Of a stretch of DNA of 64,000 nucleotides, positions 4,251 to 60,385 are shown one piece after another (positions within the stretch are counted from its first letter, which is position 1; every line of letters begins with the position of its first letter). This stretch comes from Dicyema japonicum (lineage: Eukaryota > Animalia > Dicyemida), in assembly GCA_011109175.1 (NCBI GenBank), contig RDEW01000047.1, positions 206,324 through 270,323 on the forward strand. Direction: 5' to 3'. The notes below the pieces were generated by a model, which saw only the letters and a program-made list of their open reading frames with translations, was not told the origin of the DNA and did not search any database. A program made the translations under genes and the position numbers.

Positions 4251-4418
4251 ATCAATTCCGTTACTATGGATTTAATATTATTATAGATGTTTCTCTGAAT
4301 TTTTAGCACTTTTACAAAATTCGTGTAATATTCATAGGATCTGGATACTCCGCATATACAACATTTCATCGTTCGGTTTTAGACGTCTTCCTAGTTTTTC
4401 ACTTTAACCATCACCTTA

Positions 4419-4741: not shown

Positions 4742-4888
4742 ACCCATCCCCTTAGGGCCATTCAAGTGATGTAAGCAAGGGAAACAGAAGCACACCAATT
4801 CAGCCACTTTACTCTAAAAATTTAACTAATAATATAAAAACAATCAATCAAAAATAGATAAATAAGACAAATAGAATTATAATATGAA

Positions 4889-21250: not shown

Positions 21251-21649
21251 GTCAATTGGTCAGCGGAATTTAACGATTAGAACATTTAAAACAAAATAAT
21301 AACAAATTGTATAAAATTGAATAATTAAAATTGAATAAAGTGTGAGGACTTTTCAAATTAAACAGGTTTTGTACGTCCATGTGTTCAATAAAATGGTTAG
21401 ATAAAGGTCACCGTCCATACGTGGAACTTCACTAGAACCAATCAAAATAAAAATTAGTTCCCTTGATATTTCAGATTTTCTGAGTTGAATGGTGTAATTT
21501 TTGTTAAAATCGTAAATATTTTAAAATCATAAAGTAGCAAAAATTCAGTCAATATGAATGATATTTTATTTTTAATTAACAAAAAAAATTATTAATAGTT
21601 AATCGACTCTCGAAAAAATGGTGATTCTGAATACCCGAAATCTTCACAA

Positions 21650-23200
21650 AGACACCTATCCGAAGAAATGACAGCCCAACCTCCCCCGATATATCCATTG
21701 CTTCCTCTAGGATTGCCCCGAAGATTTCATGGAACGTCTCCTACGATTTTCATAGTGATCATAATCCGATTATATTAAAACTGAGCCGATTCAATAACAC
21801 ACGGAGAATTAAAGCAACCTTCAAGGTCTACAAGAAAGCTGACTGGTCGAATTTCAAGCTCTTTATTGACAATAACCTAATACATTTTGATCCCACCTCA
21901 TTTTGCTCCATCGACAAAACAGTGGACCATCTAAACCATTAATCCTTCAAGCTGAAAAGTTGTTTGTACCACGTGCAGTTTACAAATCCTACAAGCTTAC
22001 TCTGGACTCGGAGACTCGTCTCCTCGTCAAACAAGGAAACTCCCTGAAGATAAATCATCTGCAAACCTCTTCTGAATTGCAAAATATAAAATGCTTAAAT
22101 CAGAGAATTACAAAGCTCATCAGAGAAAAGAAAGATAAAGCGTGGAAGCGCCTATTATCATCTATTGGATATATGAAATCCACGAGTCTTTTATGGAGAA
22201 CTATTCGTCGAATCAAGCTAAACTTATCAGATGAATCAGCTCCAAATATCGAGGTCCCGTCTGCAAGATCGAGGTCCCGTCTCCTACCAAATGGCGTCCC
22301 TCAAGGATCGCTTCTCTCTCCGGCATTATTCAACTTGTTCCTCAACGATTTACCCTGCCCTGGAGGACCAGATTCAATGCTTCTCACTTATGCTGACGAC
22401 CTAATCATCGCTAGCAGGAACAAATACGTGGGTACAGCAAAATCAGAGCTTCAGTCACATATTGACGACCTGGGAGCCTGGTTGAAGTTGAATCGTCTCT
22501 CCGTATACAAGGATAATTCAACGTATACAATCTTCACCACGGACAGAAAATAAAAACATACACTGGATTTGAACATTTATGGAGACTCCTTACCGCTACA
22601 GATTCGTCCAACTATCCTGGAAGTGATTTTTGACCCTTTGATGACATTTTCTCAACATGTGAAGAACGTTATGACAAAGGGTCTCAGGAAACTTAATATA
22701 ATCGAACCGCTCTTGAAGTCAAGGCCGTCACAGGAATGCGTCGTCGTCTTGTTCAATCAACTCCTAAAACCGACGATAGAGTATGCTTGTGCCTCATGGG
22801 CCTATGGAGCTTTGATATTAAATCCACTCAAGATCTATTCCCTAATTGGCAAACTACCACGTCTAACGAATCTACCCCCGATCTTTTCCCCCCAATGCTT
22901 GACCACGCAGGAATCAAAAATAATGGCTCCGGCTTCATCGGTCTGTGTGGCCAAGAAACAAGTCGTTTCTTCCATTCAAGACTAGAGGCCTCAAATACAC
23001 GAAATTTGGAGAAAAAACCCACCCCTCTTCAAACTCTAATGAAAGATGATCGTCGTCTATTCAGGAAATCCGTGGGTACTCTGGAGGAACACAGGAAAAA
23101 CCTCTCGATCCTGTTGAGGCGTACCGGGATCACTTAATTAGTTGGTTTACTCCTTCTTTTTTTGTGTTCTTTTTTCGGGGTTATTAAATAATAATAATAA
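21650..23200 (+). mobile_element. Family-B APE-RT LINE, internally deleted and frameshifted
   Basis: SDHNPI, GVPQGSLLSPALFNLFLNDLP, LLTYADD; ORF ends RRTGIT*, followed by the conserved 3' end and (TAA)n. Confidence 0.9.
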
Positions 23201-23279: not shown

Positions 23280-23460
23280 CCAGAAAGTGTAAATATCTCA
23301 AATGTTCCAGAAATTTTTTAAACCCATGGACCACCTATTATACTTCAAACAGACAATGGTCTGGAGTTCAGAAACCCTTTCTCAAGGAAATTGTGACAGG
23401 CTAAATGTTGACAAGATTAGACGGTGCATAGCAGTCACTCGGAGTAGAATAAAAAAATTA
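23280..23460 (+). mobile_element. Integrase (rve) core remnant
   Basis: HGPPIILQTDNGLEFRNPFLKEI...QSLGVE resembles the DDE core (LQSDNGxEF; QSxGxVER) of Gypsy/Ginger-type integrases; interrupted by stops and the gap. Confidence 0.65.
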
Positions 23461-23475
23461 ATTGAATGTTTTGAT

Positions 23476-24190
23476 NNNNNNNNNNNNNNNNNNNNNNNNN
23501 NNNNNNNNNNNNNNNNNNNNNNNNNNNNNNNNNNNNNNNNNNNNNNNNNNNNNNNNNNNNNNNNNNNNNNNNNNNNNNNNNNNNNNNNNNNNNNNNNNNN
23601 NNNNNNNNNNNNNNNNNNNNNNNNNNNNNNNNNNNNNNNNNNNNNNNNNNNNNNNNNNNNNNNNNNNNNNNNNNNNNNNNNNNNNNNNNNNNNNNNNNNN
23701 NNNNNNNNNNNNNNNNNNNNNNNNNNNNNNNNNNNNNNNNNNNNNNNNNNNNNNNNNNNNNNNNNNNNNNNNNNNNNNNNNNNNNNNNNNNNNNNNNNNN
23801 NNNNNNNNNNNNNNNNNNNNNNNNNNNNNNNNNNNNNNNNNNNNNNNNNNNNNNNNNNNNNNNNNNNNNNNNNNNNNNNNNNNNNNNNNNNNNNNNNNNN
23901 NNNNNNNNNNNNNNNNNNNNNNNNNNNNNNNNNNNNNNNNNNNNNNNNNNNNNNNNNNNNNNNNNNNNNNNNNNNNNNNNNNNNNNNNNNNNNNNNNNNN
24001 NNNNNNNNNNNNNNNNNNNNNNNNNNNNNNNNNNNNNNNNNNNNNNNNNNNNNNNNNNNNNNNNNNNNNNNNNNNNNNNNNNNNNNNNNNNNNNNNNNNN
24101 NNNNNNNNNNNNNNNNNNNNNNNNNNNNNNNNNNNNNNNNNNNNNNNNNNNNNNNNNNNNNNNNNNNNNNNNNNNNNNNNNNNNNNNNNN
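23476..24190. other. Assembly gap (N run)
   Basis: Run of N. Confidence 1.
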
Positions 24191-24560
24191 GCCTAAAATA
24201 ATTAGGAATCAAAACATTTTTGATTAAAATTTCATTTTCAATTTTAATAATTTCTGGAAGTTTCTGGAAGATTCTGGAAGTAATTTTGGCTACTTTTAGC
24301 CAGCTTCTCCATCTTGTGACAACAACTTCGGGTGGATTTCCTATTTATAAAAACATTTCACAGCGTATTTTGTTCTTCACCGTGGCAACCTTTACAGAAG
24401 AAATCAGGTTATCAACATCTGTGAAGTAGGATTTTAATGTAATAGATGTGAACAAAAATGACGTGGAAAATATTTAAATATAAAAATTTCATTGAGGTCC
24501 CAGCTAAATTTAAATTTATTCCTACCACTTGTCATTTATCTTGCGGAATCTGTGACGAAT
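24191..24560 (-). mobile_element. hAT-like DNA transposase remnant
   Basis: VDNLISSVKVATVKNKIR...IGNPPEVVVTRWRSWL resembles the PPxPVxTRWGxWL motif. Confidence 0.6.
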
Positions 24561-24625: not shown

Positions 24626-24875
24626 TTTGAATAATAGAGCCACGTGGCGCCATGTGGTGCTATGTGGATAGTTTGTCAAAAATTCTTTTTTCCTTCCGAT
24701 GGCGTCACTGGATCCACCTTACTGAGGAGGCGCCCAATGCCTGGCTGGCATCAAGAGGATCCAACAATTCTTCCCTGGGGACAACGCCGTTACCTGGTGA
24801 CAAGTTCTGGAATGCTGGAACGAGTCAGGATCGATGAGTTAGTTAGTTTGGTTACCCTTGGTCTTTGGAAATAAT
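24626..24875 (+). mobile_element. Bipartite short non-autonomous element of family B
   Basis: Starts GCCACGTGGCGCCATGTGGTGCT (shared with 51209-51180). Middle aligns with the 5' end of the 29.9 kb LINE (AAGAGGA..CTTCCC..GGGG). Ends in a family-B-like terminus. Confidence 0.75.
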
Positions 24876-25570: not shown

Positions 25571-25664
25571 AATAACAAAATAAATGTCGTTAAATCGTTA
25601 TAGTTTATTTATATTTTAAAAAAATATGCCGATTATTATTTTATTTTATTTAAATCAAACCTTG

Positions 25665-26111
25665 ATGACGTTGATCCAATCGTTAGTCATTCCTGAAGAA
25701 TTTTCTTCATCCTTCCATGTAGACCGTCAGATCATATGTCCACATTTGATAAGAGTTTTCTGCAATATGGGAAGACATATTGAATTGAACTCTTTCCGGG
25801 ATGATCAAGTCCCAGGAGGTGAGTTCCAAATATACACGTGGATGGATGCCTCCTTAACGGAGCTTTGTTGTTTGATAAGGCAGGTGAAGCCAGAAATTCG
25901 TCGTAGAGGCACTGTTGTTAACTTTAGTGAGATTATGCCTGAACACCGAAGCAATAAGTTTACGAGGAGGGACATTGGGACTATCATTGTTGGGGAAAGG
26001 ACCGATGATGACGATTTGACACTACATTCCAGGAGGTTTACTATAGGGAATTACATATCTGTGTCCATAAGTCTTCCAAATATTCAGAAAAGGAGATTCA
26101 ATTATTACTGA
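25665..26111 (+). CDS. SAP18: Histone deacetylase complex subunit SAP18 (ASAP/PSAP component), intronless
   Basis: VDRQIICPHLIRVF, FQIYTWMDASLTELCCLIRQV, RFTIGNYISVSI match SAP18 motifs; likely ATG at 25665. Confidence 0.9.
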   Translation: MTLIQSLVIPEEFSSSFHVDRQIICPHLIRVFCNMGRHIELNSFRDDQVPGGEFQIYTWMDASLTELCCLIRQVKPEIRRRGTVVNFSEIMPEHRSNKFTRRDIGTIIVGERTDDDDLTLHSRRFTIGNYISVSISLPNIQKRRFNYY

Positions 26112-26974: not shown

Positions 26975-27560
26975 TTTAACTACGTCATGTGGTTTGACAG
27001 GATGGACATAGCTAAAGAAAATCTCAAAAATTCTGATTGTTTAACTACGGAGGGTTTTGAACACTGAAATATAAACCAGGGAGCTCAAATCCCAGAAATC
27101 AATGGTTATATGTGATTTGAATCAATTAGATCCACCACAGAAGTTTGTAAGATCAATCTGATAAAATATTACGTAAAAATATCCCCAAGGACCATGAGAA
27201 ATTGGGCATACCCCTATTATCTCAAAAAAGGAAAACAACCTACTCAACTGGCTTGATGATCACGGAATTGTGACGTTGACGAGGAGATAAAATATTACGT
27301 AAAAATATCCCCAAGGACCATGAGAAATTGGGCATACCCCTATTATCTCAAAAAAGGAAAACAACCTACTCAACTGGCTTGATGATCACGGAATTGTGAC
27401 GTTGACGAGGATATACAACCACTCGACCAATAAAATTATTATCCCATTTGAAACCCAGAAAAACAAACAAGACCCGGCTTCACATATATGTATCGATAAT
27501 CTATTCGATGTCGAGACTGGTTCTCTAAAAAGACTTTTGTCCAGACATGAAATTTAAGCA
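26975..27560 (+). mobile_element. Family-B LINE remnant with 5' hallmark
   Basis: CGTCATGTGGT at 26983-26993, then CAAAAATTC and AACTACGGAGGG; later an RPIKLL-like remnant. Confidence 0.55.
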
Positions 27561-27714: not shown

Positions 27715-29596
<1,882 letters not shown>

Positions 29597-29894
29597 CAAA
29601 ATTAATTTGGCGGTCGATAATATAAAAATTGGTAAATAAATAATTAAATAATATATTATTAAAGTATTTATAAAATTACTTAGTTTAAATAGTCCAAGGT
29701 ACTCGAAAATTCTCCACACTCATCGAAATTAATTTGGCGGTCAATAATATAAAAATTTGTAAATAAATAATTAAATAATATATTATTAAAGTATTTATAA
29801 AATTACTTAGTTCAAATAGTCCACAAAATTAGAAAAAAAAAGTCCATCAAAATTATTTTAATGTTTAATTTTCCGAAGTCAATTATTACACTGG

Positions 29895-32800
29895 TTAAAA
29901 TGGTAGCGTGCCGTTATGTGGTCCACCAATTCAAAAAAATTCAAAAAGATTTGGCAACGCCCAGAGGGCTTCTAATACCCTCCCGAAGAGGACCATTAGA
30001 CCCCTTCCCCCGGGGTCATTATCGACCCCTGGCAATGTGTTTAAAGAAAGTCCAAACATTCCCGGCGAAAACCCTCAGCCCACTGTGGAGAAAAGAAATT
30101 TACTGCTCTCCAATTAAACATAAACGGAATTAAAGGAAAGGTCAGGGAACTCCGTTCAATCCTGGCAAATCAGAAGATCGACGTGGCCATGATGCATGAT
30201 TCCACTACTTCATTCCCCGGATACGAGGCAATCAGGGTGGACCGTAAAAAGAGAAGAGGGGGTGGACTACTTACTCTATTCAAAAAGAACCTGAAATGCA
30301 GAGAGATTACTTCGGAAGTGAGGAAACTTTGTTGGAAATGACGAGGTTACTGAGGCAATTGGAATCTCGCTTGGGACAACGAAAGGAAGTATGTGCCTCG
30401 TGAATATCTACTTGCCTTTTCCCGGCTCCTGCCCAAAGGACTATGTTATTCCAAACCTATCAAGATTGGCTATCTACGATGAGATCATCATATGTGGAGA
30501 TTTAAACGCAAAGCACCCATTATGGTTGTCAACCCAACAGGCCGACACGAGAGGGAAGCTATTGTTATTGAAATCGGACTCCCTAACGATACTGAACGAT
30601 CTAGCGAAAATTACAAGGACCCCACTCAGAGAGACAGATCAGCCTACCTCACCGGATGTAACACTCTGCTCATCGTCGCTTTCATCAAAAATTGATTGGT
30701 CAGTCCTCTACGAAACAAGAAGCGACCATAATCCAATTGTGATGAAGGTCATGAGAGAAGTCAGAGTGAGGAGAACACCTGCTAGTTATAACTATAAAGC
30801 TGCTAATTGGGAATTGTATCGCGCAATCTCTGATGATAGACTGAAGAATTGTTACTTGGTCAGCTTCAAATCGCTAGAAAAAGCGATCAAATACTTTACT
30901 TGCACAATCCTAGAAGCAAGATCATTGGCTATTCCCAAATATCGTCTAAACTCCTCTAATGGTCGAGGGAAGTCGGCATTGATCAAAGAAATAAATCACC
31001 TCAAAAAATTAATTGGATCACATTAAAAACGAAACTTCGGATCAGAGCTCTAAACAACGAAATAAAGGCCAGAGAGTTCAAGGCCCAGAAATTGAAGTGG
31101 AATCGGATTCTTACAAAGGTAAATCGCAATCGTAGTACCGGAGAAGTGTGGAAAGCCATCCGAAATGTTGCAAAGGGAGAAGAAACTTCCCCCGAAAATG
31201 ACTATACTCAACGAGACGTTAGCAATTTGATAAAATTCTACCCAAAAATTTTGTACAAGGAACAAGAAAGTCGGAAGTGCTTCTCTCTTCATGGAGAAAA
31301 TTGAAGAAGGATTCTAACCCAGTTTACTTCTCGGATGAAGATGTGAAGAATGCCCTGCATTTTACAAGAACAACGTACTCTGCCGGTTCCGACAACATTC
31401 CAGTAGTGTTATTGAAGAACCTTGGAGATATTGGAGTCGGTTTTCTAACGTCGGTGTATAACTATTCAATTAATTGTAATGTAATACCGTTGTTATGGAA
31501 GCAAGCCAACATCCGACCTATACTGAAACCTGGAAAACCTAAGGAAGATCTAGCATCATTTAGACCTGTGTCATTGTTATGTTCCATATCGAAAATCCTG
31601 GAAAGGCTTTTGCTTGGGAGAATCAAGGCTTTCTTACTAGAAAAGGATTTTCAACAAGGTTTCAAGAACGATTGTTCTACATCAACGTACCTACAGAAAT
31701 TAACCAACTTCATTAGAGATGGTTTTTCAAACAAACCAAGGCATTTGAAGACAGTCTTATGTTCCATTGATATTAACAAGGCTTTTGATTCTATTTCGAG
31801 AAAAATATTATCAAAGAAAATTTTTTCAGTCCGAGATCAACGTACCTACAGAAATTAACCAACTTCATTAGAGATGGTTTTTCAAACAAACCAAGGCATT
31901 TGAAGACAGTCTTATGTTCCATTGATATTAACAAGGCTTTTGATTCTATTTCGAGAAAAATATTATCAAAGAAAATTTTTTCAGTCCGAGATCCCGGGGA
32001 AGCTTAAACTTTGGATAACAAATTTCTTAAGTGGACGAAGGGGACGTGTATGCCTAGGAGGACTGAAATCAGTCTTACGTCTTCTCCCAAACGGTGTCCC
32101 CCAAGGATCTCCTTTATCCCCCGCCTTATTCAATTTATACCTGGCAGACCTCCCGACACCGGAATCCAATAACGATGTTCTACTCACATATGCGGACGAC
32201 ATTGTTTTGGCATCGCATGATAGGGATATCCAAAATGCTAAAGAAAGATTACAAATTAACCTGGACCGACTCAACGCCTGGGTAATAAAGAATCGACTCA
32301 CGGTAAATACCAGAAAGTCGGTCACGTCTATGTTTACTTCGGACAAAAAGTTGGGGAAGATGACTGTCAAGTTAAAATTGGACAACATTGAAATCCCCTT
32401 CACCAAATGTCAGAAGATCCTGGGCGTGACACTGGATACACACCTATATTTGTCACCATACGTGGCAAACATTGTTCTGAAGTGCGAGAAGAGGATCAAT
32501 GTATTAAATGTTTATCTGGAATATGGAAGACAGGTACCCACTCAGTCTTGATGAACATTTACCATCGAACCATGCTTCTCGTACGTGTGTGCTTCGTGGG
32601 GACCTTCATTATCATGGACGAACAATAAGAAAATTAAGGACGTTCAAAAGAAGGCTTTCAGAATGACGGAGCGGTGGTCTTGTGGGAGACACAGAACCGG
32701 ACCGACTACTCTGGAGGTCCTCATTAAACAAAACTCCGGCATGCGGGAAGATGGCCCTGCAAATACAGTCAGCCGCCTTGACGAGCTTGTGTGGGTACGA

Positions 32801-32910
32801 GGGAGGAGCACCGGGAAAGAATGAGGATTTTGGTGGAACGCATCGGGATCACGTGATAGTTAGTTTTGGTTTTACCGTGGTCTTGGGTGTTAAATAAATT
32901 AAATAAATAA
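29895..32910 (+). mobile_element. Near-full-length family-B LINE (~3 kb, single APE-RT frame, no ORF1 evident), frameshifted
   Basis: 5' hallmark at 29912-29922; LQLNINGIKGK, ICGDLNAKH, SDHNPI, SFRPVSLL, DINKAFD, GVPQGSPLSP, YADD; GIT* terminus and A-rich tail. Confidence 0.9.
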
Positions 32911-34564: not shown

Positions 34565-35818
34565 TCAGTTAGAAGGGGCAACACAATCTAAACATCTTTC
34601 CATTTTTTGATGATATTCCTCAACTTGAAGATACATTTCGGAAAAGTTAAACTCACATCTGAGCTTTTCGCAGCATTCATTCAATATTTTGGAATAATCG
34701 CTGTTACTTTCTACAGTGAGATTATTAATACAACCAGTTGCCACGTGGGCCGCAATAACAAGCTTAGAGTGGGTTAGAGACCATGCTCTGACGTTGTGAA
34801 CAGCCATAACTCCTGGAATATTGGCCAAGCAGTTCCACAATCTGTTGAAATCTACTCCGACAGGAACAGCTACCACGAATTAATAATCAAGCCTCACCTT
34901 CCATTAAAACGTAGAATATATCCTTCATTACCTTATACATGCTAATAATGACGAGAACAGAAAATATAAAAGTACAAATTGGGTCCACGATAATCAAATT
35001 TGGCTAAATCTCACATAAATAAGCTCCACCTTGAAATAAATTATCAGAGCTGCTGTGAAGACTCCAACGCTTTGAATCAAATCTCCTATCACGTGGATGA
35101 AAGCAGCTGATAGACCCATACTTTTATGTTCATGTCTAGGCTCTGGGATATGGTTATTCCACTAAAACCATCACCGATGATGAGTTCTTGGTCGTCGTCG
35201 TGATGATGACTATGATTATGTCCCTGGTGGAGAATAAATACAAGTCTAAAAGTCATCATAGGAGCCAACAGAACATTGAAGACCACACCACAGCCGGAGA
35301 CAATCAACATTATCTTGGCATCAATCTTATAGTCCCTTCTGATAACTCTATGGACTGCTGCATAGTCCAGAATGACAGTCAGAATGATCAGAAGCATCAT
35401 AGAAAAAAGGGAAGCCAGGACCTCTTTGGTTTTTGAGTAAGTAAACCTATTCTGTGCCAACCAAAACTGAATTTTTTGGTGGAAGGTTTTGAAAGGAAAA
35501 CGAGTGATAGGTAGCTGACAAAGATGCTGATTACGTCTACCAGCATGTGGGCAGAGTCTGTCATCACTGAGATGCTGTTGGACATGAAGCCACCTAAGTC
35601 ATAATAGGAACTACCAATGAATTCTAGAAGAGTGAAGATCCCCGAAATTATAAAGGCAATGAGCAGTTTTTTCTTTGCCTTCTTTGTTGTGTGGTCATTT
35701 GAATTCTGTGAATGACAGTGACAGTTATTGAACGACTCATCATCTAAAAGTCAGAGACAATGGAAAGTCTGACGTAAAACAAGTAAAATTAATGCAAATA
35801 ACCGTTGACTTGACTCAT
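34565..35818 (-). CDS. Zinc transporter, SLC30/ZnT family (ZnT2/3/4/8-like)
   Basis: TDSAHMLVD and AAFIHVIGD (HD-HD site), FSFGWHR, His-rich loop HQGHNHSHHH, VHNVRAWSLT, C-terminal CLDC; introns mostly 21-26 nt. Confidence 0.92.
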
Positions 35819-36269
35819 TGAATTAATTATTAATTTAAAATTATATATATTAGATTTGGTACGCATATGCGACCTACTTTCAATGATTACATAATTAGGA
35901 CTGAACCCCACAGATTAGTCATATCACAGGTAACTTGACTCATTGAATTAATTATTAATTTAAAATTATATATATTAGATTTGGTACGCATATGCGACCT
36001 ACTTTCAATGATTACATAATTAGGACTGAACCCCACAGATTAGTCATATCACAGGTAAACCATATTAACTAAATCTCCCGTTTTGGATTTTGTGGATATT
36101 GAATTATTCAGAAATCGAATAATTATGTCATATGCGTTATAGGGCTGACAATTTCATTGTCACATTAAATTCTAATATCAAGTCGATTTTAAGGAAATTC
36201 ATGCAGGACACACTTGGAAGGTTTACATTGAATTATTCTCCTCTTAAAAAATTTTTATTAAAATAAAGA

Positions 36270-36420: not shown

Positions 36421-37085
36421 ATATTACTAAACCACATATAATATGCCAACTGAAGAACTCATCACAATGCTATCACTCATAAACATCTGTGCTATATAAT
36501 TCTTTATAGAGATGCACTAAGGGGAGATTCGATAATTAATAATCCCATTATTCCTTCAAGACGGATATCTTTGACCAAAGCTTTGTTATAATCCAGGCTG
36601 GATTCCGACTCAACAGTTTTTTAAATGCAAAAAGTTTTTTAGTTCATTTTTAATCCATATATGCTACAGATGGTCCCATTATTCCTTCAAGACGGATATC
36701 TTTGACCAAAGCTTTGTTATAATCCAGGCTGGATTCCGACTCAACAGTTTTTTAAATGCAAAAAGTTTTTTAGTTCATTTTTAATCCATATATGCTACAG
36801 ATGGAGGGATTAAGACATCACAGTATCATCGATCAACCACAGCCAAGTTAATCGATAATTTGAAAATTTAGTATTCTCGGTTGTTTGTATGAAGCCGTAC
36901 TATTAACATAGGCACATATCTCACCGATTACCATTTTCCCGTCATTTTTGGCTCATATATTCTAATACTCACATGCAGTTCAAACTATTTTATATTATTA
37001 CAGTCTTTGTTCTGCCTCCAAGTTCTTTGTCTCCAAGAAATTACAGTCTGTCTCCAAGAAATATTTTTTTTAATCTATAAGGCTG

Positions 37086-42597: not shown

Positions 42598-42705
42598 NNN
42601 NNNNNNNNNNNNNNNNNNNNNNNNNNNNNNNNNNNNNNNNNNNNNNNNNNNNNNNNNNNNNNNNNNNNNNNNNNNNNNNNNNNNNNNNNNNNNNNNNNNN
42701 NNNNN
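42598..42705. other. Assembly gap (N run)
   Basis: Run of N. Confidence 1.
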
Positions 42706-45250
42706 TGTTGTGAAAATTGTTGTATAAGACTTTTCGGGACTTGTATGTAGAATGTTCTTAACGAGCCAACAGTTCAGATCGTCCAATGAAGCTTGTAGCC
42801 GGTAAATAGCAGTATGAACGCAATGGTCTTTGACTGCGACGAATATATCATTCGCATATGTCAGAACCAGAGTATTTTCACTGATAAGGGACCCAATTTG
42901 GAAGGAACTAAGTCACTGACCTAGTTTTTCCAGCAGTCACTCTTCCTCTTCTTCCATTTAAGAAATTAGAATCCAGATTTTCAGGTTGTTTGGGATTTTT
43001 GACATGAGAATCTTCCTTATCAAAAGCTCTCTTGGGACAGTGTCGAAAGCTTTTTCTATATCGATGGAGCATATCAATGACTTCTGATGAAGTTTGCGTT
43101 TTAAGTCATTCTTGATAAAATTTGTANGTCACTGACCTAGTTTTTCCAGCACTCACTCTTCCTCTTCTTCCATTTAAGAAATTAGAATCCAGATTTTCAG
43201 ATTGTTTGGGATTTTTGACGTGAAGATCTTCCTTATCAAAAGCTTTCTCGAGACAGTGTCGAAAGCTTTTTCTATATCGATGGAGCATATCAATGACTTC
43301 TGATGAAGTTTGCGTTTTAAGTCATCCTTGATGAATTTTGTAAGGCATGTAAGATGCGTTTCTGTGGAGTGCCCTTTTCTGAATCCGTGTTGAAAAGGTG
43401 CGTCAGGAAGGTATGGTTTGATTAGTTCAAGAATCAGCTTTTCCTGAATTTTTGATGTAACACATATGAGAGATATTGTTCTGTATGAAGCTGGTGATCC
43501 CTTTGGTCGCCCGGGTTTCAGAATAGGTCGTATGTTTGATATCTTCCATATGGAAGGAAAACAATTTTCGTTGATTGAAAAGTTGAAAATTTTGGTGAGG
43601 GCCATGATAGCATAGGGGTCTATGTTTTTCAGAACTATTGCAGGGATTCCGTCCGGACCGTAGGAGTAAGTTGACTTTTGACCCATAACCATTTTCTGCA
43701 CGTTCTCCACAGAGAAGACAATCGGGTAGGTAGTTCTTTTAGTTTAGAGGGCTAGGATGGATGGACCTTCGAATTTTTTGTGTGGGATGAAACTCGTGGA
43801 GGAGTAGTACTTCATAAGTTTGTTTAGCAAGACCTTGTTTTCCATTTCTTCACGTGCGGCCGGGTTGTCAGCGTTAATAAAGCTTCTAAGTGTTTTCCAC
43901 ATTTTTGTAAGTGAGTTCTGCTTGTTTAGATTGGACATGAGGTTTTTCCAAACTTTCTCTTGTTTCTTTCCATTGTTCCTGATCTCTCCTTCTAATTTAC
44001 GAATTCTCAATCTTGTTTCCCAGGATTGTATTTAAAGGCTTTTTAGGTAATTTCTTTTTTTATGAGTGGATCGGCTCTGGGAGAAGGCATCTTTCTTGAA
44101 CTCAATGGCCTTCTTTTAATACAAATTTTCATTCCCTCGCGTACCACTCTATTAAAGTAGTGTAGTGCTTTATCGATGGAGTTGAAATTGGATAAATGAA
44201 AGTCAAGTAGATAATAGTCGACAAAATTTGAGAAATTTTCCCAGTCGACATTTTTGTAGTCGGTAAATAAAACAGGTTTCTTTACAATTGACACTCTTCC
44301 TTCAAACTTAATCATAACGAGATTATAGTCACTGTTGGTCTCGTATAGCACTGTCCATTTTGTTAATGTTGCGATGTTTGGTGAGGCAAGAGTGAGATCG
44401 GGGGACGATGTCCTGTCATTCGATCTGTAGGGAGTCCTTGTATTGAATATAGGGTTGTTTAATATTACCAGTTCATCCAGATTTGATAACAATTGGTTTC
44501 CTCTGACATCGCATGGTTGGTTCTTGAACCATGTCGAATGCTATGTGTTTAGGTCTCCACAAAGTAACATATTTTTTGATTTGTCGACGTCTGACAAGGA
44601 GAAACTGAATTCCTTGAGGCATGAGTTAGGCGATGGTACATACACATTCAATATGTTTATGTTTCCGATGCTTGTCTTGACTGAAATACCAATATATTCG
44701 ACGGAAGACATTAAGTTGACAAAAGTTTCGTTTCCGTACGGAATTTCTTTTATGTTTATGTTTCCGATACTTGTCTTGACTGAAATACCAATATATTCGA
44801 CGGAAGACATTAAGTTGACAAAAGTTTCGTTTCCGTACGGAATTTCTTTTTTAATAAGGGTAAACAGTCCACCACCCATGCCAGCTGGGCGGTCACGCCT
44901 GATGACGTGATAGTTTGTAAAGACGGGAGTGGAAGAAGACGGAGTTAGTCTTGTTTCTTGAAGTAGGTAAATGTCAGTATTATACTTTTTTAAGAGGTTT
45001 ATGAGTTCGAGGATTTTCCTTTTCATTCCATTTATGTTTAGTTGAATCAAAATAAGGGGTTTTGGAGGTCAAGGATTAGGGTTTACATCACCGGAAAGCA
45101 TTCAAGACAAGAGAGAGAGGCAAGTGGGGCGACCGTCCAAAAAGGACATTTCTTTAAGATTGGACGTAGTGGATGGTTCTTTTGTCTGGGACATATAGTC
45201 CACAGTTTACGTCACCAAAAACGGCGAACCACATGACGTTCTAAGACACG
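42706..45250 (-). mobile_element. Family-B LINE with intact-looking 5' end, 3' part lost in the gap
   Basis: CGTCATGTGGT at 45238-45228; IQLNINGMKRK, LLQET, LCGDLN, SYRTISL, QHGFRKG, DIEKAFD. Confidence 0.88.
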
Positions 45251-45348: not shown

Positions 45349-46259
45349 ATGGACGTTGTGAATTTTAAATCACAAGCAGAAATGTATAAACTAAAATTAT
45401 ATATAGTCACACAAATTTATGCCAGAAGATCGGAATGGAACCTTTAAAGTACAAGCACGGTACAACCATATGTGGTCTGATCTTCAAGGTAGTCATTTAA
45501 GTATACAAAAGGACGGAGTTGTTCTAGCTGCAGACACAAGGGCCACCATGGGTTCAGTCATAGCAAATAAACACACTCAGAAAATAGTTCCTGTGGCTGA
45601 TAACATATAGTAAATTTGAATTTTTACATTTAGTGTAGCTGGGGCAGGGACATCAGCGGATCTGGATAAAGTCCCCCTGTTAATGAAATGTCAGCTGGAG
45701 TTACATTGCCAGACAACTCGAAAACCAGCACTTGCTTGTACAGCACGTGAGATGTTCCGTCAGCATCTGTTCAAGTATAGAAGCTGTCTCATTAAAGATA
45801 TGAAGGGCATTTGGGATGTCACATGGTGATGGGAGCTGTGGATAGGACTGGAAAGTATTTGTACCGAATCAGCAATAATGGGTACACCTCATCGACTCCT
45901 TTTGCTGCTGATGGTTGAATTGCCCTGTAATTGTAGGATCTGGCTGTCTTGCGGCTGTGTCCATTTTGGAAGCGTTCTACACCCATGACATGGATGAGGC
46001 CATGGCTATAAATCTAGCGGCAATGGCTGTGGACGCGGGGAGACAGCTTGATCTGGGTTCTGGGAATGATATTGATGTTTGTATTATTAAGAGTGACGGG
46101 AGTCGGCTTATCAGAGGATTTAGCCAACAGCCACCCTCAGTGTTGTTTTTGTGTTTATTCGATAGTGTCAATTCTATGACGTATCCCGCAAATACTACTT
46201 CCGTTCTTATGGAGAAAGTGATTGAGTATTCCGTGGAGACTGAAATGGTCATTGATTAG
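45349..46259 (+). CDS. PSMB7: Proteasome subunit beta type-7 (beta2)
   Basis: Propeptide then G|TTICG, ADTRAT, GAGTSAD, GSG, DLGSGNDIDVCII; six introns of 23-24 nt. Confidence 0.93.
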
Positions 46260-46479
46260 ATATAACTTTGGCTCTTGATTAGATTCCTTTCTTGCTTTTT
46301 ACTGTTAATATTTCAGCTTAGAATGGCTCTGGTGCGGCTGCATCCCCCAAATACTACTTCCGTTCTTATGGAGAAAGTGATTGAGTATTCTGTGGAGACT
46401 GAAATGGTCATTGATTAGATATAACTTTGGCTCTTGATTAGACTTCCTTTCTTGCTTTTTACTGTTAATATTTCAGCTT

Positions 46480-46640
46480 AGAATGGCTCTGGTGCGGCTG
46501 GAAGTATTACAGCCTCTTTCCTAAAGGAAATCGGGGGGGGGAAATTGGCCCACCGCAAGAAAGACGTGCGGGAAGCGGTCTGGCTGAGGAAACGCTTACT
46601 CCGTGATGTCAGCAGCCGCTCTCCCCCATAGTTAATAAAT
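46480..46640 (+). mobile_element. CRE-like 3' stub
   Basis: FLKEIG.KLAHRKKDVREAVWLRKRL followed by an AATAAATAA tail. Confidence 0.55.
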
Positions 46641-48429
46641 AATATTTTATTGTTAATATATTTTTCACAAAAAAAAGAATGCCTTTAATTTGACAAGTTT
46701 GATTTCTCATAAGCTTGAGATTTATCCTAAGAGAGAAGGTATTCGTGACTGTGATGGTACTACTTGCTTAAAGTTTTGAAAAAGGGTCGAAAGCTTCTAT
46801 CTTCCACCCAGAGGTAGACTGTCTACACAATAGGAGTTTGAGTCTCATCTTAACGGTCACCAGGAGCAGTAATTCTAAGCACTGATCTCAGGAGGTCTGG
46901 CTCCATTATTTTGTTATCTTCTGAGCCCAGTATGCCACAGATGGACACGAAGTCATGTATTCTTTCANATTTTTCACAAAAAAAAAGAATGGCTTTAATT
47001 TGACAAGTTTGATCTCTCACAAGCTTGAGATTTATCCCAAGAGAGAAGGTATTCGTGACTGTGGTGGTACTACTTGGTTAAAGTTTTGAAAAAGGGTCGA
47101 AAGCTTCTATCTTCCACCCAGAGGTAGACTGTCTACACAATAGGAGTTTGAATCTCATCTTAACAGTCACCAGGAGCAGTAATTCTAAGCACTGATCTCA
47201 GAAGGTCTGGCTCCATTATTTTGTTATCTTCTGTCCCAGTATGCCACAGATGGACACGAAGTCATGTATTCTTTCAATTTAGGTTTCGTTTTCTGACCGA
47301 GTCAAGATTTTCATTTGGTCATGTTATATTAATTGCTGGAGATGTTGTAAACTCTACATTCGATATGATAAGCTGGAAGATCTTTTTCTTTCAGTGTGAG
47401 TGGTCAACAGGAGTAGATTTTAGGGCATTATAGATCTAAAGGGTGAGTTCTGCACTGTGATAGTAGTTGAATTGCCTTCGGTATGTGATAAAGTTAATGA
47501 AGAATTCAACGGGGATGGAGACATGATATCGGTTTGACACAGTCTCCCGGAGAAGAAATTTGTGTACCAGGACTTCCAAACTGAGGGGATAGTCGAGATT
47601 TTGATTTTGCTGGAAAGAACTACAGGGGAAAATCGGTCAAATGTTTTTTCCCGGATTAATGGAAATATATACGGGTTTTTAGAGCAAAAAATTGTTGAAG
47701 TCGTCGGTAATAAACTGGAGAGGTTGGAAGTTGTCAAATGGAGGGGTCGATGTCTATGTTTTTAGTAAAGTTGAGGTGGCAGAAATTTCGGTAAAAGCTA
47801 TTCTTTCCAGAGTCTACGATATCTAGAGATCCAGATATCAGTTAATCCAAAATACAGAGACCATTATGGGCTTTTAAGGAGAGTTGGTTGGTTGCGATTG
47901 AATATATATGTTCTTACTCTCCATGGTGGTTGAACTTACTGTGATCGAATATCTTATGACAGAGAAGAGTCATATTAAAATAATAAACAATTATTCGCTT
48001 GAGGATTAAGACTAGAATCGATTTGGTTGAGCTGGTGAATTATTATAGTTTTGATTTTGGATCAAGACTAACCTAACTTTTGTTGAATCAAAGAGCATAT
48101 CCTCACGCTTCAAGTTCAGAGAAGACATGTCCTCCCCCGGAGTAAGAAGATGAAGTCGATAAGTAGATCATTTGATTCTAGTTCTCTGCATATGATGTTT
48201 TTAAAATTATGTAATTATTCATAGTTCAGCCGTTGTGGTAGTATGTGGGAGAAACATATAGTATGTTGGTATCCTCTCATTTTGAAATGTATTCCTGTGA
48301 CATGTTCTTAATTATTTTAAAGGATTTCTTCATTCAGAGCTGATGAATAGACAAAGAAGAATGATCAACCATTTCCTTTACAGTCCAATAACCACGATCC
48401 ACTGACCCCAATGATACTTTCGGTCAATT

Positions 48430-50200
48430 TATTTATAAATTCCCTCTTAAATGGTCAAAAACCGCTTAAAATATGCGAGAACGCGGGTCTTTATCTATAA
48501 AACCCTGAGGATAAAGCAAACCACTTCGCCAAACACTTCGAGACACAGTTTAATCCGTTGGGAGTGAATATACCTAAATTTATTGGAAATTTAAGACTTA
48601 CTAACAAAATTGCAGTAAAGGAAGTAACAAATGCATTCTATAAAAGCAATCGTTCAGCTGATGATGGCATCTCGGGCGAGTTACTAAAACATGCTCCGGT
48701 TATTGTTGGGAATATAATCATGGATATATTAAACAAGTCTATGGAACTTCACTGTTCACTTCCATTAGGGCATGGAGTTTAATTCCCATACTCAAACCTG
48801 GGAAAAGAAAAAGATCACTGGATGGATTAAAGCCTATTATTCTACTTTCAACTATCAGGAAGACATGATCGATCATAGTGCTTAACCGTATACCAGAGCC
48901 CCATACTCAAACCTGGGAAAAGAAAAAGATCACTGGATGGATTAAAGCCTATTATTCTACTTTCAACTATCAGGAAGACATGATCGATCATAGTGCTTAA
49001 CCGTATACCAGAGCCGGTGGACAAATACCTTTCCCAAAGTCAAAGTGGGTTTAGAAGTGGAAAGTCTACCTCAGATATCGTGTGGAGTCATCGGTGACTT
49101 AAATCAATATGTCAGAAATATATGAAAGTCATCTACATCCTAGGAATTGAACTAACGAAGGCTTTTGGCAGCATAAACAGCGAAAACCTCATGAATATCC
49201 TAAAGGAACTTTTTGACGAGGACTTCCTGAGACTAATAAGTCTATTACTTTCCTGAACTGACCTATCCGTGAGAATAGGAACTAAGTATTCAAAAAGTTT
49301 CAGTACTAATGTGGGTACTCCACAAGTAAATTCATCATCGCCAATTCCCTTGATGAATATCCTAAAGGAACTTTTTGACGAGGATTTCCTGAGACTAATA
49401 AGTCTATTACTTTCTTGAACTGACCTGTCCGTGAGAATAGGAACTAAGTATTCAAAAAGTTTCAGTACTAACGTGGGCACTCCACAAGTAAATTCATCAT
49501 CGCCAATTCCCTTGATCATATACTTCAAAGCTCCCCTCAGGGAGCAGAGGAAAGATATGGGTCCCAAATACGAAGACATAATCGAATTACTATATGCAAA
49601 TGATGTGGACTTTGTGTTCCTGACCAGTGAACACTNGGGCACTCCACAAGGAAATTCATCATCGCCAATTCCCTTGATATACCTCAAAGCTTCCCTCACG
49701 GAGCCGAGGAAAGATATGGGTCCCAAATACGAAGACATAATCGAATTACTATATGCAAATGATGTGGACTTTGTGTTCCTGACCAGTGAACACTTGACTA
49801 AATTTTACTCTAAGGCAAACTTATTTTGAAAAAATAAGATCTGTGTATAAACATTACAAAAATTGATTATCACGAATACAACGAGCAAAATCAAGAAATG
49901 GTGAATTCTGGAGACATCCAAACAACTCGGCTCACTACTAGGTGATGCTGAGGATATTTTGCCAAGGAACATGCCGGCTACCATAATTTCAAAAATGTAC
50001 AAATCTGGATAAAAAAAGCATGTATCACTGAAACTTCGTGTCAGACTATTCGACACGTTTGTTAAGCCAGTATTGCGATACAATTCCGGAACATGGGAAA
50101 TTTCTAAAAAACGATTTACTTTTCACAGAAGCCAACTACGCATATTGACTGGAATCTTCTGGCCGATAAAAATCTCAAACGAAAAATAATATGTTATTTT
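48430..50200 (+). mobile_element. Degenerate RTE-like LINE (RT region) with duplicated segments
   Basis: LPLGHGVLIP, SQSGFR, GTPQG, LLYANDVD, KQLGSLLGD, LFDTFVKP. Confidence 0.85.
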
Positions 50201-50259: not shown

Positions 50260-50800
50260 ATAAATTACCACGGCATCGTGGACCATTTTCAAGGAAATCT
50301 CCCTTGAGACGTCATTACTATCGCAACAACGAGGACCTTGTAACCAAGCATCTGCCCAATCTCATTTGCAAGCAAGTCATACGTACTGTTTTTCTCCAAC
50401 CTCTATAGTCTGCAAACGGTCTTGGGACGTAATGCCAGCTTCTATATAAGACTTGGTCAGAATCCTTATCATATACCAAAATTTCAGGTTTATGAGGCTT
50501 GACTAGCACCGAGGTACGGATAACACTGTCTACCTTAATTTGGACCCAGGTGTTATCTACTACAGATTGCACCTTATGAGTCCGCAACTTTCTGGTGTAG
50601 CGAATACCATACTTATTGCATAGTAGAAGATGAAGACTCCTTATTACCTCGTTATGCCTCCACACATAGTCGTGGCAGACCATGGGTCCACACCGAGTAG
50701 CTAAATGATCAACCGACATGCTCCTTGACTTACAATGGGGACATGTATTTGTTGATCGACACTAAAAAATACAGCGCCTCTGATCGAGGTGAGTTGTCAC
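50260..50800 (-). mobile_element. RLE-type non-LTR remnant (zinc knuckle and PD-D/ExK region)
   Basis: SVDHLATRCG...HDYVWRHNEV...HKPEILVYDK. Confidence 0.85.
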
Positions 50801-50896
50801 CGTATTTTAGCCATATTGTCGACGAGTTAAGGTCGACATGTGGGTTGTCCAATGCTCTAAAGAAGACCTTATGAAGTTAAGTTTATTCTTTTCCAT

Positions 50897-51209
50897 TATT
50901 TATTTTATTTATTTATTAACCCCGGATACACCGAGAAAGAAGTTAAAGTAAATAACTAGTTAAGTGTATCCAGTTTCCACTTCTACAGAAACAGAGTCCA
51001 TCCGGAACCACCATAAAAGGTAAAAGACGTCCATAGTTGCAGTTGCGGAAACCCCTACAGTGGAGTGGGAGAGAGCAAATGATCCTTTTTCGTTCCAGCC
51101 TGGCACTGGGCGCCACTCTAATAGGAAGAGAGAGGAGGAACAGACGAACAAACAGAAACTTCAATCAATTAGCCACGAAGCACCACATGACGCCACGTGG
51201 CTATTTCAA
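50897..51209 (-). mobile_element. Complete bipartite non-autonomous element of family B (313 bp)
   Basis: Perfect 10-bp TSD TCTTTTCCAT (50887-50896, 51210-51219). Head GCCACGTGGCGTCATGTGGTGCT inside an 8-bp hairpin; family-B 3' stem-loop and (AAAT)n tail. Confidence 0.85.
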
Positions 51210-51598
51210 TCTTTTCCATCAAATTATTATGTTGTAATTCGATCAACGCCTTCACATTTACTAATCCACCATCATCAACACCATACATAGCTGACAAAAA
51301 AGGTCTGATAGTGCCTAGGTGTGTTTTCTGGGTCGTTATTATGGCGTGCTTCCTAGCAGACACACTTGACCCAGCTATCAGGGTGTCGTGCATTCGCATA
51401 AGGATGCGCTCACTTAGTTGGACTACTCCACACAGTCCACGGCCGAATTTATCAAAAAGTAAATATAGTCTCTCTTTACTGACTGTCAGCACATGGACAT
51501 GGTTCTCTCTGAGTACTCCACAAATAAATTGTTTTATTAATTTTTTTTAAAATTAAATAAACGATTGTTTTCAGATTTTCTATATCCTTGTTGTAAAT

Positions 51599-52635
51599 AT
51601 GAACGTGAAAAGACATTTGTTTGTAGGTTGTAATAAAATAATAAAGATCAAGGTGGACTGCCAGAGAGTGCCGATGATAAATTACTCGAAGCAATTTTTA
51701 CTCCTTTCGGTGAAGTATTAGAAGTTCAAATCCCAATGGACTACAAAACTGAAAAGAACCGAGGATTTGCCTTCGTAGAATTTGAGACTCCCGAAGAAGC
51801 AGCCTCAGCTGTCGACAACCTAGTAGATCCTTTACTCACATTAGAACGACTCCGAACTGTATGGGAGGACCCTCAAAGTTCACTACAACAATCCATCAAA
51901 AAGAGGAGAGGCCACTTCTAAGCCCGGTACTCATTTTAGTCATCCTAGTTTGGAACACTGAGGGATGGTTTGACAGATACACTGAAGCTCCCCCTCCTGA
52001 AGAAGGAGAGGAAGAACTGCCCGTTGTTCAGTCAAAGGAGACTGAGCTGACTGAACAGACGAAAGAAGAGACGGTTCCTGTTTCTGGTCCAAGTGGATTT
52101 CCCCTGGTGTACTTGGAGGTGACCATTGGGGGAGTAAAATCTGGGAGGATTTGCATTCAGCTGAGGACTGACGTGGTCCCTATTACTTGTGGTAAACTGT
52201 AGAAGTGATTTGTAGAGAATTTCCGTTGCCTGTGCACTCACGAGAAGGGGTTTGGGTTTCGTGGAATGGCCTTTTATCGAGTGATCCCAGACTTTATGTG
52301 CCAGGCAGGGGATATCGTCAACAACAACGGGAGTTTTGGGAAATCCATTTATGGGAGGAAGTTCAACGACGAGAATTTTGAGTTGAAGCACATGGGGCCG
52401 GGAACTGTGGCGATGGCAAATTCAGGGATAAATACGAACTCTTCCAACTTTTATATAACCTTTACGAAGACTTCGTGGTTGGATGGTAAGAATGTTGTAT
52501 TTGGGACAGTCATGGAGGGTATGACTGTGTTGTATAAAATTGCGGTAATTGGAGGTTTTACTGTAGGCTATGGGGACTAAGAGTGGGAGACCACGAAAAA
52601 AGATTACTGTGTTTGACTGTGGACAGATTAATTAA
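51599..52635 (+). CDS. PPIE: Peptidyl-prolyl isomerase E (RRM + cyclophilin)
   Basis: LFVGGL and RGFAFVEF (RNP2/RNP1); [47 protein letters not shown]; five introns of 22-26 nt. Confidence 0.93.
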
Positions 52636-52999
52636 TTTTTGTTAATTTTAATTTTCATTACCTGTTTGGTTAATTTGGAGGTTTTACTGTAGGCTATGGG
52701 GACTAAGAGTGGGAGACCACGAAAAAAGATTACTGTGTTTGACTGTGGACAGATTAATTAATTTTTGTTAATTTTAATTTTCATTACCTGTTTGGTTAAT
52801 TCTGTAAAATTTTTCCCCATTTTATATATTTTTTCTTGTCACCTTGAGTTGGAAAGGATACGTCTTAACCATTATTGAGAGACTTAATGCACGTGTATTA
52901 GAAATACATTAATTATAGGTCTGTGTTTGTTTACCTCACCACGTAAATATACATAAAATTATTCCAAAGACCAAGAGTTAAATCATGCGGTCATGTGCC

Positions 53000-59520: not shown

Positions 59521-59826
59521 GGCGGAGTATGTGTCCAAAGTAGTTAATAAAGTTTTTATTATTGAAATCCCTCCAATAAGAATTATATAGTTAATTAATT
59601 CTTGTTATAACATTAGTTTTAATTATTAAATATTTAATAATTACATAGTTTGTAGTTGTGATGAACCCTTCAATGCGTAGATTAATAAGAGACTTAACAT
59701 CCAAAGTAGTTAATAAAGTTTTTATTATTGAAATCCCTCCAATAAGAATTATATAGTTAATTAATTCTTGTTATAACATTAGTTTTAATTATTAAATATT
59801 TAATAATTACATAGTTTGTAGTTGTG

Positions 59827-60385
59827 ATGAACCCTTCAATGCGTAGATTAATAAGAGACTTAACAAAGTAATAACTGACTTTATATTACTAGAATGGAGA
59901 ATGAGGATAAATATGGGCTTAGTGCGACACCTACAGACGAAGACTTTTACGTTTGGGATGCTGTGATAGTGGGGTATTATAATATCTTAATAAAAGACCT
60001 GAGGACACCCCATATGCGAATGGAATATTCAAATTGAAGATGAACTTTACGCCGGAATACCCAAATAAGCCTCCAATTGTTAAGTTTGTTACTAAAATGT
60101 TTCACCCTAATAGTATTTATATTTAAAATTGTAGTTTATGCTAGTGGACATATTTGTTTAGACATACTAAATGAGAAATGGAGTCCTTCATATGACGTTG
60201 GTTCTATTTTAGCATCTATTCAATCACTCTTGGATGACCCATTTATTCAAAGTGCTGCTAACTTCCAGGCTGCTACTCTTTATACTAAAAATAAGAGAGA
60301 ATATGATAGGAAAGTTATGGATCTTATTGAAGCTAATGCTATGAGTGTTTCTGAGTTGGATAATAATGACCAACAAACTGACTAG
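59827..60385 (+). CDS. UBE2A: Ubiquitin-conjugating enzyme E2, Rad6 type
   Basis: [40 protein letters not shown] (catalytic Cys), WSPSYDV; introns of 25, 23 and 22 nt. Confidence 0.93.

Follow-up and report, generated by a model that had tools for sequence, protein, structure and literature searches.

A family of short retroposons probably built from LINE ends and a hairpin head in the dicyemid Dicyema japonicum

Introduction

What is the short, repeat-flanked element found at positions 50887-51219 of a 64,000-nucleotide stretch of the Dicyema japonicum genome, and which mobile element placed it there? The stretch (assembly GCA_011109175.1, contig RDEW01000047.1, positions 206,324 to 270,323 of the forward strand; hereafter the window) is eukaryotic DNA of ~37% G+C with many fragments of long interspersed nuclear elements (LINEs). 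An initial annotation of the window took the element for a two-part, internally deleted derivative of the LINE at 29895 (its family B, here LINE-B), moved as a unit and parasitic on that family. The analysis presented here leads us to consider that 50887-51219 is probably one copy of a family of short interspersed nuclear elements (SINEs), named SINE-1: a non-autonomous retroposon without long terminal repeats (non-LTR), of ~300-327 nt, built from LINE ends and a hairpin head.

D. japonicum is a parasite of octopus, whose genome of 67.5 Mb in 377 scaffolds (36.7% GC) consists of repeats for 49% and carries many copies of the LINE ORF2 (PMC6736024). As regards Dicyema retrotransposons, this genome paper is the only one that our literature search returned, and SINE or LINE families are not described in it.

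The element and its family

The element, of 313 bp, lies on the minus strand between perfect 10-bp direct repeats, TCTTTTCCAT, located at 50887-50896 and 51210-51219. On that strand the element terminates in TTAATAAATAAATAAAATAAATA, a tail of the (AAAT)n type (50897-50919), just as the initial annotation had read it. The two repeats are, respectively, its 3' and 5' target-site duplications (TSDs), the 5' one reading ATGGAAAAGA on the element's strand, and the score of this exact pair (10) is above the control 99th percentile of 8. When the genome of the species itself (67,542,437 bases, 377 pieces) was searched with the element, 1950 first-look candidates were obtained; the 40 candidates that were scored are all 80-94% identical to it and mostly full length, which bears out the repeat family proposed at the outset. 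In an alignment of 30 copies with their flanks, the similarity extends from a single first base (AGCCGCGTGGCG...) to a single tail (...CGGGGTTAATAAATAAAT), and the flanks are unrelated. The first base is within 4 nt of the common start in 24 of these 30 copies, and the tail end is the same in every one. The mean identity of the copies is 92.7% to the consensus and 87% between pairs.

Exact TSDs of at least 9 bp were present in 25% of the full-length copies versus 2% of mismatched flank pairs, and with mismatches allowed the TSD score exceeded the control 99th percentile in 7 of 27 full-length copies. Examples are the 16 bp of L003, the 13 bp of L007, the 12 bp of L011 (~22 bp with one indel), the 17 bp with two mismatches of L030, and the 10 bp of both L023 and the window copy; around six more copies have probable TSDs, that is, 7-11-bp repeats beginning directly after the tail. 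Given that the junction between the LINE-derived parts is common to all copies and that the TSDs are independent, we conclude that the short form was propagated as a unit. It should be noted that in nearly all the clear-TSD copies among L001-L030 a copy-specific, A/T-rich stretch of 7-20 nt separates the 5' repeat from the conserved start. In the window copy this leader is the non-conserved 7-nt TTGAAAT (51203-51209, minus strand). The leaders may come from transcription begun in the flank of the source copy (5' transduction) or from nucleotides added at the 5' junction. The copies of LINE-C, a family described below, are likewise variable in the few bases before CGTGGCGTC.

A less biased sample is given by seven SINE-1 copies that were met by chance in ~315 kb fetched for other reasons, and this density suggests a copy number of roughly 1500 per genome. 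Among these copies there are 5' truncations at profile positions 29, 90, 113 and 131, as is usual for copies made by LINE machinery. Two incomplete copies had been indicated in the window. The one at 2712-2950 was confirmed as a 5'-truncated SINE-1 (2713-2927, minus strand; profile positions 113-311, 80% identical), but of the other, at 16288-16545, only a distant relative at 16384-16532 was recovered (E=3.5e-6). SINE-1 is thus short, dispersed, present in high copy number and non-autonomous, with TSDs and a simple-repeat tail, as expected of a classical SINE.

The window copy is embedded in another repeat (50300-51520), for which there are at least 544 candidates genome-wide. A paralogue of that repeat, L005:1155-2368, has its own SINE-1 insertion, in the same orientation and 45 bp off, and each of the two loci retains the empty site of the other. 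Two insertions 45 bp apart may reflect a target preference or a coincidence, whose chance is roughly ~0.02 (rough estimate).

Relationship with LINE-C and LINE-D

The LINEs that match SINE-1 belong to two families. LINE-C has a single open reading frame (ORF) with APE and reverse transcriptase (RT) domains and is abundant and young: a protein search gave 3919 candidates, many of them 88-96% identical in amino acids, and the copies are 92-98% alike among themselves. Full-length copies of 2.98 kb, ~98% identical, occur at L065 (1454-4430) and L067 (1449-4422), while the one at L066 is internally deleted. The LINE-C copy detected in the window by tblastn (21589-23200, plus strand) is 5'-truncated and internally deleted; its tail, at 23107-23193, matches the SINE-1 profile and is the most similar to that of SINE-1. 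LINE-D is a second very young family. Its copies, of 2.98 kb, share 99% identity, and the open frame reaches 1037 amino acids.

Both ends of LINE-C are represented in SINE-1. The profile positions from ~52 or 90 to 185 or 198 match the LINE-C 5' end (L065 1429-1581, E=3e-10; L067, E=2e-8; L066, E=1e-5), so that SINE-1 nt ~85-200 align with LINE-C nt ~1-130. The first base of LINE-C was placed at (A)TTTTCGTGGCGTC by means of 40 5' ends and the TSDs of three copies, and the homology with SINE-1 begins at about this base (ATTAGAGTGGCGTC). At the other extreme, positions 229-315 match the last ~87 nt of LINE-C with an E of about 1e-7 each in nearly every copy, and the profile tail was found at the 3' ends of nearly all 43 LINE-C and LINE-D loci; a 3' end in common with a partner LINE is a further trait of classical SINEs. 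In local alignments compared with shuffled sequences, the 5' module reached z=21.7 with LINE-C, 8.9 with LINE-D and 2.8 with LINE-B, and the tail 18.3, 11.1 and 1.1, respectively.

These values do not agree with the family that had been named as the donor. The first ~190 nt of the element had been aligned by eye with the 5' ends of the long LINEs at 29895 and 26190, yet neither blastn (word 7) nor a 30-copy nhmmer profile gave any match there at E<=10, and local alignment to LINE-B recovered only a 24-nt motif (LINE-B nt 9-33). Nor does the assignment of the last ~60 nt to the family-B 3' terminus hold (the z=1.1 above). The general idea of a non-autonomous derivative of the front and the back of a LINE, moved as a unit, survives the analysis; what changes is the related LINE, now LINE-C and, more distantly, LINE-D. 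Regarding 26190, which had been considered a long LINE, Pfam recognized no LINE domain in it. Directly upstream of this element there is a host gene, an intron-free ORF at 25626-26111 with a SAP18 (Sin3-associated p18) domain (E=1e-32).

The architecture of the partner LINE, of ~3.0 kb with a single ORF of ~1000 amino acids containing APE and RT and a short 3' untranslated region (UTR), would fit the RTE clade. Database relatives of the LINE protein number 22, at 22-33% identity; the best ones (30-33%) are unnamed, and only the most distant one has a name, an uninformative one. In addition, the Dicyema genome contains LINE families whose proteins are 60-71% identical to that of LINE-C.

Head, spacer and linker

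SINE-1 contains more than LINE ends, and in this respect the description of the element as bipartite was too simple: the head and the spacer place ~85 nt in front of the LINE 5' module, and a linker of ~30 nt between the modules matches nothing in LINE-C. The LINE 5' end is otherwise joined directly to the LINE 3' end, with the same junction in all the copies. Nothing in LINE-C corresponds convincingly to consensus positions 1-85 or about 186-228, and positions 1-85 are absent from every LINE sampled. In the window copy, always on the minus strand, the parts succeed one another as follows. The hairpin head AGCCACGTGGCGTCATGTGGTGCTTCGTGGCT, the hallmark of the family, occupies 51170-51202 (minimum free energy, MFE, of -19.4 kcal/mol; z=-4.4, 0/200 shuffles) and is conserved in 24 of 30 copies. 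The pyrimidine-rich spacer TAATTGATTGAAGTTTCTG...CCTATTAGA, conserved among SINE-1 copies, extends over 51117-51169. The remnant of the LINE-C-like 5' module is at 51021-51116, the linker at 50993-51020 (no detectable LINE counterpart; consensus 186-232 against the whole of LINE-C, z=0.0), and the LINE-C-like 3' module at 50905-50992.

The head, positions 1-32, forms a 13-bp hairpin with a four-base loop, of -19 to -22 kcal/mol (z of -4.4 to -5.6, no shuffle being as stable). Its 5' strand, GTGGCGCCATGTGGTGC, is nearly the starting sequence of LINE-B, LINE-C and LINE-D (GTGGCGTCATGTGGTTC in LINE-C). However, the head is not simply a LINE 5' end, as had been supposed, since the resemblance is limited to the first ~25 nt of LINE termini: the best local match of positions 1-85 in LINE-C is with its nt 9-38, at a weak z=2.2 equalled by 10/200 shuffles. 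With low confidence, we favour seeing the head as a duplicated LINE 5' terminus that has collapsed.

The other usual source of a SINE head, a gene transcribed by RNA polymerase III (Pol III; tRNA, 7SL, 5S), was sought with ARAGORN and Rfam, and neither scan detected it. ARAGORN found no tRNA in any SINE-1 copy (326 kb), only an unrelated tRNA-Glu in L020. Rfam gave no tRNA or other match on the head alone at E<=10 (126 nt), nothing at E<=1 on three loci and nothing at E<=0.1 on the window. At 4400-4760 (minus strand) there is a relative of SINE-1 whose head is tRNA-like and contains a B-box-like GGTTCGAG; ARAGORN and Rfam call no tRNA there. This head is followed by the same spacer (its start, TTGGYTGAAGKTTTCTG, is common to both), a degenerate module and a different tail. 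This arrangement implies that heads have been exchanged within the superfamily, in one direction or the other.

The 5' module and its deletions

The 5' ends of LINE-B, LINE-C, LINE-D, the 26216 element, SINE-1 (long form) and the sister family SINE-2 described below can all be drawn as P1-P2-P3-P1'-P4-P2', which is the nested double pseudoknot of ribozymes of the hepatitis delta virus type (HDV-like). In SINE-1, P1 pairs GGCGUC with GGCGCC, P2 pairs GAUCC with GGAUC (GGUUC/GAACC in LINE-C, GGCUC/GAGCC in LINE-D, GGUCC/GGACC in LINE-B), and P4 pairs GUGCC with GGCAC (GUGUA/UACAC in LINE-C). The fold was tested on a MAFFT alignment of 14 modules (A2), in which 91% of the cells pair, versus 35-58% when the partners are slid. 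Seven pairs present changes on both sides, a number reached by 2/500 shuffles, and the covariation score is 0.308 versus 0.202 (0/500). Nested MFE folding of the modules was no better than that of shuffled sequences (z=-1.2, z=-0.4), so the support for the pseudoknot comes from covariation only.

Cleavage by such a fold would leave its trace at the 5' ends of the copies. None of the 40 LINE-C 5' ends starts at G1, all of them lying 3-8 nt or more upstream, and LINE-D starts 8 nt upstream of G1; a GT immediately preceding G1 is conserved. With the predicted cleavage site 7-8 nt within the LINE copies, nothing in the genome suggests that the 5' end is set by the fold. The base after P4, equivalent to C75 by position only, is C in LINE-B, LINE-C, LINE-D and SINE-2, G in SINE-1 and U in the 26216 element. 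We would expect the SINE-1 pseudoknot not to cut: it is internal, it has G after P4, and the copies do not start at the predicted cleavage site.

In SINE-1 the module is also a hot spot of deletions. The whole module is kept in only about 7 of 30 copies, whereas in eight, the window copy among them, an identical stretch of 27 nt between two GTGGCG repeats is missing, and with it the 5' strands of P1, P2 and P3; relative to the long copies, the window copy has lost the first 27 nt of the pseudoknot, and the junction lies between 51116 and 51117. Most of the remaining copies have each their own deletion inside the module. Altogether, 23 of the 28 deletions of at least 5 nt, or 16 of 21 distinct events, overlap the ~70-nt module, which by our calculation is a ~twelve-fold excess per nucleotide. 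The 27-nt deletion is present on at least three subfamily backgrounds, and it must therefore be recurrent or have been spread by recombination. The copies with an intact module are the nearest to the consensus (about 0.956 versus 0.90-0.93 in the others, as averages of per-copy values). We infer that the fold persists in the master copies and is frequently lost from their progeny, in the course of reverse transcription or afterwards, with a stable structure to be copied through or with direct repeats on both sides.

Modules of this type are not restricted to the families named so far. At L051:2324-2563 (minus strand) two LINE-C-type pseudoknot modules stand in tandem, ~175 bp apart, each followed by sequence unrelated to LINE-C (ATTMAATTTTTTTACGCATGCCGA...), and this locus may correspond to another non-autonomous element or to a small satellite with the module.

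The 3' end and the sister family

A long-range stem followed by GGGGTTA(A/T)TAAAT and a simple-repeat tail is common to the 3' ends of SINE-1, LINE-B, LINE-C and LINE-D, and LINE-C and LINE-D copies have, like the window copy, a terminal tail of the (AAAT)n type. The stem is formed by GGAUACAC...GUGUAUCC in SINE-1 and by GGAUCAC...GUGUUCC in LINE-C and LINE-D. In the window copy it corresponds to GGATACAC...GTGTATCC, after which comes GGGGTTAATAAAT. RNAalifold found it unaided on alignment A3, with four compensated pairs. By analogy with known stringent LINE/SINE pairs, this stem would be the expected recognition handle for the LINE reverse transcriptase.

A sister copy had been indicated at 24626-24875 on the grounds of a common head, and the resemblance proved to go further. 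This element (24639-24875, plus strand) represents a sister family, SINE-2, with the same head, the same spacer and an intact-looking pseudoknot (nhmmer profile positions 2-140, E=4e-12). Its tail is of the LINE-B type (z=11.5 with the LINE-B 3' end) and does not match LINE-C or LINE-D in local alignments. LINE-B itself, at 29895-32910 (plus strand), has APE and RT domains in Pfam and the same fold at its 5' end. Judging from these comparisons, LINE-B is not the source of the 50887-51219 element and supplies only the tail of the sister family.

Other features of the window

Several features of the window are apart from the retroposons. Head-to-tail duplications of 100-310 bp with 94-100% identity were found at 27160-27418, 29570-29823, 31681-31993, 35795-36058, 36543-36804, 42909-43347 and 44652-44850, and also at 46183-46500, 46660-47280, 48785-49015, 49191-49794, 52549-52801 and 59534-59865. 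Several of them touch single N's (43127, 46968, 49636), and the one at 31681-31993 doubles part of the RT of LINE-B; they look like artefacts of gap closing or assembly and not like biology. There are also two runs of N, at 23476-24190 (715) and 42598-42705 (108), and the apparent ORFs at 23302-24212 cross the first one and are not real. Finally, the 543-amino-acid ORF at 16726-18357 consists of internally repeated DNA with self-matches 66-78% identical at many offsets, and long ORFs are present on its opposite strand too.

Discussion

As we mentioned before, our preferred reading is that SINE-1 is a family of retroposons made of LINE ends and a hairpin head. Its most serious competitor, which we regard as unlikely, is that SINE-1 is a classical tRNA-derived SINE, whose head would be the rearranged remnant of a tRNA (tRNA-Arg) with an internal Pol III promoter and in which only the body and the tail would be LINE-derived. 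The head contains TGGCGCCATGTGG, which we take to be loosely similar to the A box of tRNA genes, and GTTCGTCTG is found ~35 nt downstream of it, at the place expected for a B box. The tRNA-like head before the same spacer in the relative at 4400-4760 points in the same direction, and the variable leaders of 7-20 nt would fit initiation upstream of an internal promoter. However, the ARAGORN and Rfam searches described above were negative, and the same 17-nt motif opens the 5' ends of LINE-B, LINE-C and LINE-D, where it forms strands of P1 and P2, so that a tRNA origin is not needed to explain it. Furthermore, an internal run of four T (GTCTTTTACC) is kept in most copies and a second one (CTGTTTTG) in many, and such runs are unfavourable for Pol III.

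We give very little credit to the derivation from LINE-B that was proposed initially. The LINE-B start, TAGCGTGCCGTTATGTGGTCCACC, does resemble the SINE head as well as the beginning of the internal module over the 24-nt match, its 5' end fits the same fold, and the sister family has a LINE-B-like tail; against this, 29895-30400 gave no blastn or nhmmer match at E<=10, the tail of SINE-1 is far closer to LINE-C (18.3) than to LINE-B (1.1), and the ~85 nt at the 5' end and the ~30 nt in the middle of the element are not LINE-derived. More remote still, to the point of being negligible, is the idea that there is no mobile unit at all, the element being either a decayed, internally deleted LINE or a piece of a larger repeat multiplied by segmental duplication. 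It draws on the repeated nature of the flanks and on L005, which aligns with the window across flanks and element, but the insertion in L005 is displaced by 45 bp with reciprocal empty sites, and all the other copies have unrelated flanks and TSDs of their own. As the source of the window copy, segmental duplication is ruled out by these independent insertions.

Several observations weigh against our preferred reading of SINE-1 as an element of LINE ends and a hairpin head, and have to be set beside the evidence for it. The 30 copies were chosen as the best matches to the window copy, and the sample is biased to full length. The identity of SINE-1 to LINE-C is only ~70-75% in both modules, too low for SINE-1 to have arisen by recent deletion from today's LINE-C copies; these seem to be relatives of the donor or partner and not the donor itself, and the true partner or ancestor may be a LINE family outside our sample. 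The head matches LINE termini weakly, and the 7-20-nt leaders do not follow from the model. As for the fold, the pseudoknot was drawn by eye from the same sequences that served for its test, and on the SINE-1, LINE-C and LINE-B modules Rfam recognized no family, HDV-like or other, at E<=10, giving only chance matches to unrelated families. Lastly, mobilization in trans by a LINE-C-like element is a prediction made from homology.

With these reservations, a mode of propagation can be outlined. Read from 5' to 3', SINE-1 consists of the 13-bp hairpin head, a pyrimidine-rich spacer of ~55 nt, ~115 nt copied from a LINE 5' end, a ~30-nt linker, and ~87 nt copied from a LINE 3' end, including the stem and GGGGTTA(A/T)TAAAT, closed by the (AAAT)n tail. 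Its RNA would enter new sites by target-primed reverse transcription, with the enzyme of a LINE-C-like element recognizing the common 3' stem and tail. The head would serve transcription or the stability of the RNA, although this is less certain. Since most copies, the window copy included, have a deletion inside the pseudoknot, this structure would be dispensable or would be lost at insertion. Families with the same head and body would swap tails and in this way change partner, as the LINE-B tail of SINE-2 suggests.

Among known systems, UnaSINE1 and UnaL2 of the eel, a LINE-tailed SINE and its LINE that Kajikawa & Okada (2002) are said to have described, reportedly with "stringent" recognition of the 3' end, resemble SINE-1 and its relatives in the 3' stem-loop and tandem-repeat tail in common with the partner LINE, the TSDs, the 5' truncations and the high copy number. 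In contrast, no recognizable Pol III-derived head (tRNA, 7SL, 5S) was found in SINE-1, and its body is a LINE 5' UTR. SINE-1 is most similar to the R2 SIDEs of Drosophila, in which a 5' HDV-like ribozyme is joined to the LINE 3' end and the whole is moved by the LINE machinery (Eickbush & Eickbush 2012, PMC3414825). That study also reports hybrids whose 5' module and tail come from different LINEs, as well as tRNA or snRNA sequences that template jumps have added to the 5' ends of R2 (PMC3414825). SINE-1 has the same plan of a 5' module plus a LINE 3' end, and the hybrids parallel SINE-1 and SINE-2, with the same body and different tails. By analogy, template jumps like those of R2 would be a ready route to an extra head. 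However, R2 SIDEs are rare, insert only in rDNA and begin with a ribozyme that cuts, whereas SINE-1 is dispersed and abundant, has ~85 nt before the module, shows no sign of cutting, and usually has the module partly deleted.

Next to R2 SIDEs come the elements of trypanosomatids, RIME/ingi, NARTc/L1Tc and the SIDERs, with the Pr77 hallmark and the HDV-like L1TcRz (PMC3383444, PMC3185411, PMC4035085); the initial annotation had made the comparison with RIME, and it is an apt one. These elements, too, are non-autonomous and have a conserved HDV-like 5' hallmark common to several LINE families, with activity lost in some lineages. Unlike the fold of SINE-1, which is internal, the trypanosomatid hallmark is the very 5' end, where it acts as an internal promoter and as an active ribozyme cutting at +1. 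A further difference of Dicyema is that the predicted cut lies 7-8 nt downstream of the first base of the LINE copies; besides, the host is an animal with single-ORF LINEs carrying APE and RT. What sets SINE-1 apart from the R2 SIDEs and the trypanosomatid elements is the extra head and spacer, the internal and apparently uncut fold, the deletion hot spot and the animal host.

A bolder proposal, which we put forward as a long shot, would bring these traits together. At least three dicyemid LINE families and their SINEs would keep, under selection, an HDV-like fold that does not cut the 5' end and that may serve, for example, the start of translation or protein capture in cis. In the SINE the fold would have been disarmed by a C-to-G change and would have become a structure-driven hot spot for skipping by the RT, from which most new copies would emerge with a deletion of their own, and the head, as a collapsed duplicate of the LINE terminus, would have taken over transcription, giving a SINE made entirely of LINE parts without any Pol III gene.

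The principle of a non-autonomous element made of LINE ends with a ribozyme-like hallmark is already established in R2 SIDEs, RIME, NARTc and SIDER; SINE-1 is a new family of this kind. Its description adds a clear case of LINE/SINE partnership from an animal lineage about which little is known, and the definitions of SINE-1, SINE-2, LINE-B, LINE-C and LINE-D provide a usable repeat annotation for the reduced, 67.5-Mb, half-repeat genome of this parasite. Furthermore, the conserved and apparently uncut HDV-like fold, with the deletions that accumulate in it, offers data on the roles that such folds may have in LINEs besides cutting, and on the relation between RNA structure and errors of reverse transcription.

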